A DNA stretch of 63,628 nt, filler included, from Olpidium bornovanus S191 (Eukaryota; Fungi; Olpidiomycota): assembly GCA_017911155.1 (NCBI GenBank). It is 26 parts of 26 records of this genome, joined end to end, with 100 filler letters (N's around TTAATTAATTAA, not from the genome) between each part and the next. Parts side by side here need not be neighbours in the genome. Positions count along the whole stretch, not along the records: positions 21,513 to 23,113 come from JAEFCI010013157.1; 25 more parts are not named here. One strand, written 5' to 3'. Position 1 is the stretch's first letter. Each line of letters opens with the position of its first letter. Positions 21,513-23,900 of this stretch are shown here, one piece after another. The translations under genes and the position numbers were made by a program. The notes below the pieces were generated by a model that saw nothing but the letters and a program-made list of their open reading frames with translations, did not search any database and was not told where the DNA came from.

Positions 21513-22793
21513 CAGTCTGGCTGAGAGCTACACGCCCGGCGCCGTTCTTGACGAGATTGCCGGAAACCCAAACGTTCCACTGATTGTCGCGTGGTGAGCG
21601 GCGGCCGCCTGGCGAGATAAAGGGAAAAACATGAGCGACCAAGAAAAACAAAAAGGGAGGCCCGCCCCCGCGATACTCGAGGCCGGCCCACCTTCGCTGC
21701 CTACGACGATGAAGCTGTGAGCTTCGCCGCTCTCATCCTTCAGAGTGAAGAAATTGGCAGCTTCGAAGTTGCGCCCAAAACTCGCGATCCACCCCTTTCC
21801 GGAAGAATCGTCCGCGCTCGTCGGCTTTTCGCGCTTGGGCGAAAAGAGAGGTCCCTTGTACTTCCATTCGAGCCCGTCGTCGCTGGCGTACAAAAGAACC
21901 CGACCGCCCTTTTTCCTCTTGCTGCTGCTGATCACCATGTACTGCGTGGGCGGGGCGTCGTCCGGAACGTCGAAAAGGCGGTCAATTTCGCGGCTCGTGA
22001 AGAGGTACGGGCCGCGCCAACCGCGAACGGAAAGTTCCATCGGAGGTCCGTCGATCAAAGCGGTCGGGTGCTTGTCCCACGTCCGGCCGCCGTCCGACGA
22101 CGTGGCCATCATGATCTTCTCGACGCCGCGGGGGTACTTTTTTTTCCAGGTGGGATGGCCGCTGGCGGCAGTGTAGTAGGCGGTCGGCAAGTTGTCGTGC
22201 CCGGAAGCCAGGACATAACCAGAGAACACTCCTTCGCGGTCCTCGAGATCTTCACTCCCCTCAATGGCAAGGGGCATGTCAGTCCACCTGATCATGTCTT
22301 TGGAAACGGCATGGCCCCTGCAGGAAAATCAAACAAGAAGGAGGCGGGCGTGAGCCCAAGACGTTCGTGATTCGAGAAAAATTTTCGTTCGGCCAACAGC
22401 AGGAGCGAGAAGCCGACCAGGTCATTTTGGCCCTGCCACTGCCGTGGGGGTTGTATTGGAAAAAGACGTGATAGTCGTCGGAGTTCGGATCGTAGTACGA
22501 ACCGGCCGGGACTACGGCGCGCGCGCGACGACAAGGGGCGTGATGCAGCGCGGTGAGAAGAAACTGCGGAGCAGCGCCGCGGCCAGACGCGTTCGAAGTA
22601 ATCGACCGCACAAACAGAACGCACTGCTCATCCAGTTGGTCTCGGGGTGGAAGTGGTAGTTGGGCCTGAACCTGTCGAACTCGAACTTCTCCGCCTCCTC
22701 ATCGGCGAGCGAAGCGGCGGAGGCGACCGCGGCCGCGACGCCGGAGACGACGACGGCCGCGGCGGCGGCGAAGCGGGGGCGCGACAAGCGCAT
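21513..22793 (-). CDS. Secreted GH32 (invertase/fructanase family) beta-propeller, predicted catalytically defective; 3'-truncated
   Basis: ATG 22793 and a signal-peptide-like N-terminus. FRPNYHFHPETNWMS|IPAGSYYDP...HVFFQYNP...TW|GHAVSKDMIRW; GVFSG; WRGPY; FGRNFEAANFF; VGSEG. Introns 22624-22512 and ~22418-22319. Confidence 0.92.
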
Positions 22794-23900
22794 CTCGGCA
22801 GGGCGGGGAGCGGGGCGGGCGCGGCGCGCAACGCGGCCACGGCCAGAACGGCGCGGGTGTTTGGAGGGCGGGCGGGGCGGTCGGCGGTCGGCGGCGGTCC
22901 GCGCATTGCGGCAAGTTAAGTACCACAGGCACCCCGCGCGGGGGGCCCCTCTCCCCCACCCCCCCACCCCCCCCCCCCCCCCCCCCCCCCCCCTTTCCCC
23001 CCCCCCCCCCCCGGGGGGGGCGGGGGGGGGGGCGGGAGGGGGGGGGGGAGGGGGGGGGGGGTGGGGGGGTGGGGGAGAGGGGCCCCCCGCGCGGGGTGCC
23101 TGTGGTACTTAACNNNNNNNNNNNNNNNNNNNNNNNNNNNNNNNNNNNNNNNNNNNNTTAATTAATTAANNNNNNNNNNNNNNNNNNNNNNNNNNNNNNN
23201 NNNNNNNNNNNNNCATGCTGACACGCCGCGCTCACGCAAGAAACTCTAACTACGAACCGTCAAGAGGGCGCGGGCGACACGCCAACGTGCCTATAAGAGA
23301 CCCAGAACCTCGTAGTTCCAGATAGAGCCCCAGAGCCAAAACTCACACCTCGATCCCGATCCCGATCCCGTCCTCGAACCTCGAGCTAGACTTACTCTTT
23401 GCCCCACCATTTCTCGTCCCGATCGCGCCGAAGCGCACGACAATTAAAGACTTTGTTACACGCACCGACCCTCCTCCCCCTTTATTTCTTTCGCCCGTGC
23501 ATTTCCTAGGGGACCGCCATATAAAACAGGGCTGACGTAGCTAATAGCCCCAAAACAAAATAACGAAAAGCTTTCCGTACGCTTTCACGTCTCTTTGGCG
23601 CCTCCGTGTTTTCGCCCGCCTGCTGCCCAAAAATACAACACCCCTCATTTCCACAGTACAGTAAGTAACGGTGGGCCCGTCCTTCCCCGGTGGGTTGGGC
23701 CCCACCGCTCGGCTCCGGCCCCTTTTTCTCCCATTCCCCTCTCCCTTCCCCTCCCCGTCCGCCCGCTTGTCAGCCTCCTGTATGTACATTCTTCTCTCGC
23801 GCGCCCCCCTCCCTGCTTTCCCCCTCCCCCCGCCCCACGGAGGAATGGAAGGGGGGGGGGGGGGGGGGAGGGGGGGGCCCCCCCCGGGGGCCCCCCCCCC

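Follow-up and report, generated by a model that had tools for sequence, protein, structure and literature searches.

A spliced GH32 gene in Olpidium bornovanus

The window is a stretch of 63,628 nucleotides, filler included, from the Olpidium bornovanus S191 assembly, and the piece analysed here covers positions 21513-23113 (JAEFCI010013157.1). It carries, on the minus strand, the front half of a GH32 gene that comprises at least four exons and is cut by the piece edge at 21513, after codon 328. The 5' untranslated region (22794..22855), which is C-rich and without an ATG, is delimited by the reach of an RNA contig denoted X2. Exon 1 (22625..22793) opens with the ATG at 22793 and encodes the signal-peptide-like residues 1 to ~29, the segment FRPNYHFHPETNWMS and the first base of the Ile57 codon. 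Intron 1 (22512..22624; 113 nt) begins with the donor GTGCGT at 22624 and ends with the acceptor TAG at 22514-22512, with exon 2 beginning at 22511, and the split codon formed by A at 22625 and TC at 22511-22510 reads ATC (Ile57), yielding N-W-M-S-I-P-A-G-S-Y-Y-D-P (NWMSIPAGSYYDP). Exon 2 (22418..22511) encodes (I)PAGSYYDPNSDDYHVFFQYNPHGSGRAKMT(W), with the codon of Arg83 (22434-22432) at the place where the Trp of a WGN motif is expected. Exon 3 (21692..22317), flanked by intron 2 (22318..22417; 100 nt, GT..AG) and intron 3 (21609..21691; 83 nt, GT..AG), encodes WGHAVS, VFSG, WRGPY (Gly190, GGC at 22013-22011) and NFEAANFF (Glu273, GAA at 21764-21762), and exon 4 (21513..21608), which encodes (G)GRRSPRDNQWNVWVSGNLVKNGAGRVALSQT, runs into the piece edge.

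The joined exons amount to 985 nt, that is, 328 codons with no stop, with a GC content of 0.61 (GC3 0.78), and the chance of 328 stop-free codons at this base composition is ~5e-5. An earlier note on this DNA had spoken of an otherwise intact open frame, a claim that holds over the 328 visible codons and so for the N-terminal half only. The motifs that the same note had listed as kept, namely QYNP, WGHAVS, FSG and the acid/base Glu of NFEA, are all found in the translated exons (as FFQYNP, WGHAVS, VFSG and NFEAANFF), as is the signal-peptide-like N-terminus, a term that we apply on the strength of two features, charged residues at the start followed by a hydrophobic segment (residues 8-27).

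Several other features of the piece deserve mention. Opposite the gene run two long antisense frames, at 21717-22370 (+; 217 aa) and 22660-23112 (+; 150 aa); such frames are expected at this GC-richness and are not supported as genes. Upstream, an out-of-frame ATG at 22906 (-) opens a 92-codon frame; it lies 5' of the end of the RNA contig at 22855 and, given that end, is probably outside the mRNA. Further out, positions 22915-23113 form a fold-back of mostly poly-C and then poly-G, with 98-nt arms that are 94% complementary and separated by 3 nt. The fold-back ends at the piece edge, begins ~60 nt further upstream than the RNA contig (5' end at 22855) and is found in neither of the two contigs described below; an assembly artefact of a contig end or a homopolymer is the probable explanation, the alternative being a real hairpin.

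Transcript evidence

Eight sequencing runs from two studies, presumed to be RNA, contain 0.65 of the sampled words, a value that fits a spliced message. For comparison with the window, we used contigs from one run per study (X2, 2241 nt, and X6, 1982 nt; studies of 2022 and 2025). Both contigs skip exactly 22512-22624, 22318-22417 and 21609-21691, joining 22511 to 22625 unambiguously, 22316/7 to 22417/8 and 21607/8 to 21691/2 (CT..AC ends on the plus strand), with zero indels and zero letters between the exon sides. The splice between 22624 and 22512 that gives W-M-S-I-P-A-G, as postulated in the earlier note, is accordingly the exact junction present in the RNA of two studies, and across 22625/22511 there are no extra letters and no micro-exon is seen. 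The GGC codon of WRGPY at 22013-22011, another element of that note, is identical in both contigs. [quoted passage not shown] The sole difference between the window and the RNA contigs is at position 22133, where the window has G and both contigs have T (plus strand); the change converts Pro150 (CCC) to Thr (ACC), the residue conserved among the relatives (YTRG), and the base in the window is to be explained by a variant private to the strain or by an erroneous base.

Alternative splice models for intron 1 were enumerated as well and were rejected: among 11 in-frame, stop-free GT/GC-AG splices around this intron, none (0/11) yields an Asp before P-A-G.

Could the unusual residues at positions 57 and 190 then result from an assembly or base-calling error at two codons, or from a splice model that hides an N-D micro-exon? 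The poly-C/poly-G fold-back at the piece end, which is typical of a poor contig end, and the base at 22133 that differs from both RNA contigs would be compatible with such an artefact. However, two independent RNA assemblies have the same two codons and the same junction as the window, and nothing is inserted between their exons, even if RNA contigs may miss rare isoforms, and no alternative GT/GC-AG splice restores the Asp. An artefact has been largely refuted by the RNA contigs already, and we consider it hardly credible.

Family membership and the fate of the active site

Exon 3 alone scores 59.3 bits against Pfam PF00251 (Glyco_hydro_32N), well above the cut-off of 22.1, which places the protein in GH32; the representative library yields 472 matches at E<=1e-3, and GH32 structures are among the solved-structure matches. 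An HMM alignment to GH32, suggested in the earlier note as a check, maps the key residues on solved enzymes. In HMMER searches, the solved structures closest to exon 3 are the extracellular invertase of Aspergillus kawachii (5XH8; E = 1e-18) and the fructosyltransferase of Aspergillus japonicus (3LF7/3LDK; E = 5e-11), with which the window protein shares the GVF-x-G, YTRG-type, (F/W)R-x-PY and NFE-x-x-N blocks. Each of the two is catalytically active and has the complete Asp/Asp/Glu triad, and their identity to the window protein is only ~35-40%. In the HMMER alignments with these Aspergillus structures, WRGPYLF falls on FRDPYVF and NFEAANFF on NFETGNVF. The segment FRPNYHFHPETNWMS of exon 1 aligns with FKPNYHFFPITGWMN of the Thermotoga invertase, NWMS lying on GWMN, so that Ser56 is matched with the Asn and Ile57 with the nucleophile Asp of WMND. 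The N-terminal block of the closest relative of the window protein, P0001 (see below), aligns unambiguously to the Arabidopsis cell-wall invertase 2AC1, in which D23 corresponds to the Asp of WINDP and W47 to the Trp of WGN in P0001; in the same two columns, the window protein has Ile57 and Arg83.

Three of the four functional sites that we checked for an active GH32 beta-fructofuranosidase or fructosyltransferase are missing. The column of the nucleophile Asp is occupied by Ile57 (ATC across the RNA-confirmed junction), that of the transition-state-stabilising Asp of RDP by Gly190, and that of the WG(N) Trp, which binds the -1 fructose, by Arg83 (W47 of AtcwINV1). The acid/base Glu is present, Glu273 of NFEAAN lying on the Glu of NFETGN, and the RDP Arg is also retained (Arg189). 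Three of the four named fructosyl contacts are hence replaced, in addition to the Asn that precedes the nucleophile (Ser56). The joint loss of the NDP and RDP aspartates, the central claim of the earlier note, is real at the RNA level and is seen in the alignments; Arg83 in place of the WGN Trp and Ser56 in place of the Asn are, in the same alignments, two further losses.

The weight of these replacements can be gauged from enzymes of known mechanism. In AtcwINV1, D23 is the nucleophile, D149 forms hydrogen bonds with O3' and O4' of fructose, E203 is the acid/base catalyst and W47 forms a hydrogen bond with O6' (PMC3360783). The W47L substitution raises the Km 600-fold, the equivalent W79L in KcINU1 abolishes activity, and single changes at substrate-binding residues of the yeast exo-inulinase, including the WG Trp and the RDP Arg, leave no detectable activity (PMC7545266). 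An endo-levanase in which the acid/base Glu was replaced lost activity ~4,000-fold (PMC6560043). Given that the nucleophile, the stabiliser and the Trp are all absent, it is highly probable, as judged from the aligned residues, that the window protein is not a beta-fructofuranosidase.

Might it still be an enzyme, with altered chemistry that employs another carboxylate or substrate assistance and acts on a different, perhaps charged, substrate? The retention of Glu273 and Arg189 would be compatible with such a scenario, and so would the directional character of the pocket changes, with two acids lost and Arg83 and Lys85 gained; moreover, some pseudoenzymes are described with migrated catalytic residues (PMC10211241). 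Nevertheless, GH32 enzymes follow a retaining mechanism for which the Asp nucleophile is required and in which the RDP Asp assists (PMC3360783; PMC6560043), activity drops thousands-fold or below detection when the acid/base Glu or a single binding residue is changed (PMC6560043; PMC7545266), and no candidate replacement acid is evident beside position 57. Altered chemistry is, in our opinion, very unlikely.

Relatives and the rarity of the losses

An exhaustive HMMER search produced only two matches below 1e-30, the best of which is P0001, a protein of 650 aa that is 53% identical to the window protein over 325 residues and comes from a single Logan transcript contig (SRR26555696, locus L001 34-1986). 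All the motifs at issue are intact in P0001 (WINDPCAPYYD, WGN, WRDPY, NFEVANFF). At its C-terminus, P0001 has a hydrophobic tail (…AGLLCALSAAALAFVPKL) after a Ser/Ala-rich stretch, which looks like a GPI-anchor or membrane-anchor signal and suggests that this active relative may be held at the cell surface.

A search of 5.8 billion proteins, with P0001 and with exon 3 as queries, found none closer than P0001; the exon-3 reading frame (codons 21693-22295) had no exact match in a protein collection, and no contigs encoding the full 255-aa ORF (21531-22295) were found. Two metagenome scans returned relatives of <=36% identity only, and a search of the ESM Atlas returned generic bacterial GH32 clusters only, such that the protein and metagenome collections searched contain no orthologue or fragment of the window gene.

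In the maximum-likelihood tree, the window protein and P0001 are sisters (SH-aLRT 99), and the clade next to them comprises GH32 proteins of plant-parasitic oomycetes (Albugo, Peronospora/Hyaloperonospora and Phytophthora; SH-aLRT 93). P0001 and these oomycete proteins (Albugo candida CCI44403.1, Peronospora matthiolae, Hyaloperonospora, Phytophthora) are the closest systems for comparison. The window protein shares with them the signal-peptide-like start, the motif spacing, with a 10-residue loop after the WMNDP block, the NFE(V/A)ANFFTLKDE block and a GC-rich codon usage (RSCU r = 0.81). Where P0001 and the oomycete proteins have WINDPC or WMNDPC, WGN and WRDP, however, the window protein has WMSIPA, RAK and WRGP.

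How unusual are these replacements in the family at large? In an alignment of 172 homologues pooled from the searches, the nucleophile column is filled in 135 rows, 130 of them with Asp, the RDP column contains Asp in 160 of 171 rows and the acid/base column contains Glu in 167 of 173 aligned rows, a count that includes the window protein. Ile at the nucleophile position and Gly at the RDP position occur, among the 172 homologues, in the window protein only. The other exceptions are mostly truncated or misaligned rows, although two proteins, P0096 and P0108, could genuinely deviate at the first motif. The literature searched, one library, contained no paper on a GH32 protein with a dismantled triad, and nothing specific on plasmodiophorid GH32 or on GH32 pseudoenzymes.

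Decay or maintenance?

The most serious alternative to a maintained protein is that the gene has become a pseudogene that is still spliced and transcribed, or has begun to decay: following a duplication, or once its function was no longer needed, the active site would have been struck first by chance, and no useful protein would be made. The rate of change could be read in this manner. The terminal branch of the window protein is 0.68, compared to 0.36 for P0001 (~1.9x), and Tajima-type counts of private changes give 36-39 for the window protein vs 16-24 for P0001 with six of seven outgroups; with the seventh, P0152, the counts are 26 and 21, which is not significant (p = 0.47), and over the full set of seven, p lies between 0.002 and 0.47. 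The longer branch fits relaxation as well as new function. Decay would also accommodate the facts that the changes are not seen conserved in any orthologue, none having been found in the collections searched, and that the C-terminal half lies outside the piece and may be broken. Two large raw RNA-seq runs (X22 and X16) contain no reads of the gene, which is not a valid test.

Against decay stand the frame that is open over 328 codons in four exons with perfect splice sites, and the transcripts of 2241 and 1982 nt, lengths that fit a full-length mRNA (the transcript of the 650-aa relative P0001 has 2074 nt). The pairwise dN/dS against the CDS of P0001 is 0.35 (NG86) or 0.13 (maximum likelihood), values that average both lineages and are limited by a dS of ~1-2.4, near saturation; they too speak against a gene in decay.

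The distribution of the substitutions is more telling. Defining as strongly conserved the 76 sites at which at least six of the seven outgroups agree, we find that the window protein keeps 64 and P0001 keeps 67. Eight of the losses are private to the window protein (N56S, D57I, P61S, Y74F, W83R, G84A, N85K and D190G), and these lineage-specific losses are concentrated in the active-site motifs (WMNDPxxP, WGN and RDP), where they affect 7 of 13 conserved positions vs 1 of 63 elsewhere. By Fisher's exact test, p is 6e-6 for this extended motif set, which was partly picked after seeing the data, and 0.05 when only the classical WMNDP/RDP/E motifs are counted. With seven of the eight private losses in active-site motifs and 64 of the 76 conserved sites kept, the fold has been conserved and the active site selectively taken apart, a pattern that suits a maintained pseudoenzyme better than a decaying pseudogene. 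Decay is therefore unlikely in our assessment, even if it has to be taken seriously.

A probable GH32 pseudoenzyme

The hypothesis that, in our view, probably holds is that the gene encodes a maintained GH32 pseudoenzyme whose N-terminus is signal-peptide-like and which works through binding, not catalysis. Under this hypothesis, the gene would encode a five-bladed-propeller GH32 protein for which the double-displacement beta-fructofuranosidase reaction of the family would no longer be possible, the nucleophile Asp having given way to Ile57, the RDP Asp to Gly190, the WGN Trp to Arg83 and the Asn before the nucleophile to Ser56. Glu273, Arg189 and nearly all fold-defining residues are preserved, and the pocket has lost two carboxylates and gained Arg83 and Lys85. 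That the protein is maintained by constraint we infer from a gene that is expressed and precisely spliced, from its open frame and from the way in which conservation is distributed; the earlier note had proposed a maintained non-catalytic protein, and this part of its interpretation gains indirect backing from the same observations.

What might such a protein bind? The earlier note had considered a binder of sucrose or fructans, an idea that is weakened by the further replacement of the WGN Trp (W47 of AtcwINV1) by Arg83. The loss of two carboxylates and the gain of Arg83 and Lys85 suggest that canonical fructosyl binding was probably lost together with catalysis, and with the pocket charge changed and the Trp gone, ordinary binding of sucrose or fructan at the -1 site seems unlikely. 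A protein-binding role or a different ligand would be at least as likely as ordinary sucrose or fructan binding. Two roles come to mind, each a tentative candidate to which we would give rather less than an even chance: the protein may engage an active GH32 enzyme or a GH32-directed inhibitor, as a partner, regulator or decoy, or it may bind another carbohydrate, possibly an anionic one. Residual binding of sucrose or fructan would rank below both.

Functions of this general type have precedents in other families, which we cite as analogies only. Beetle polygalacturonase pseudoenzymes are described as having a glycosidase fold, lost catalytic residues and a protein-binding action or proposal (PMC8213348), and the Arabidopsis pseudo-beta-amylase BAM9 as binding and enhancing AMY3 (PMC11326238). 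These proteins belong to other families and folds.

Closer to home, to our knowledge, the plant defective invertases are the only well-known non-catalytic members of GH32. These proteins, for example tobacco Nin88, do not split sucrose and are thought to be non-catalytic; Nin88 indirectly activates active cell-wall invertases (PMC3713406). The plant defective invertases originated from cell-wall invertases by loss of the Asp/Lys couple, the triad never being affected (PMC3713406), whereas the window protein lacks two triad residues and groups in the tree with oomycete and early-fungal-type GH32 proteins. Both the type of loss and the clade are different here.

Under a more specific and quite improbable scenario, which applies if the organism is a plant biotroph, the protein would be a secreted dead invertase with a decoy or regulatory role at the sugar interface between host and parasite; it might, for example, titrate the invertase inhibitors of the host or form pairs with the parasite's active invertase. 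It would then also be the first GH32 pseudoenzyme on record whose catalytic triad has been dismantled. The scenario takes its cue from the nearest named relatives of the clade, the GH32 proteins of plant-parasitic oomycetes.

GH32 enzymes determine access to sucrose and fructans. At present, the window protein is a well-supported curiosity rather than a mechanism. If it is indeed non-catalytic, it would represent a clean example of a glycosidase scaffold that was given a new use while the fold was kept and, along with its intact sister P0001, it would make a tractable pair for asking what a dead invertase does.
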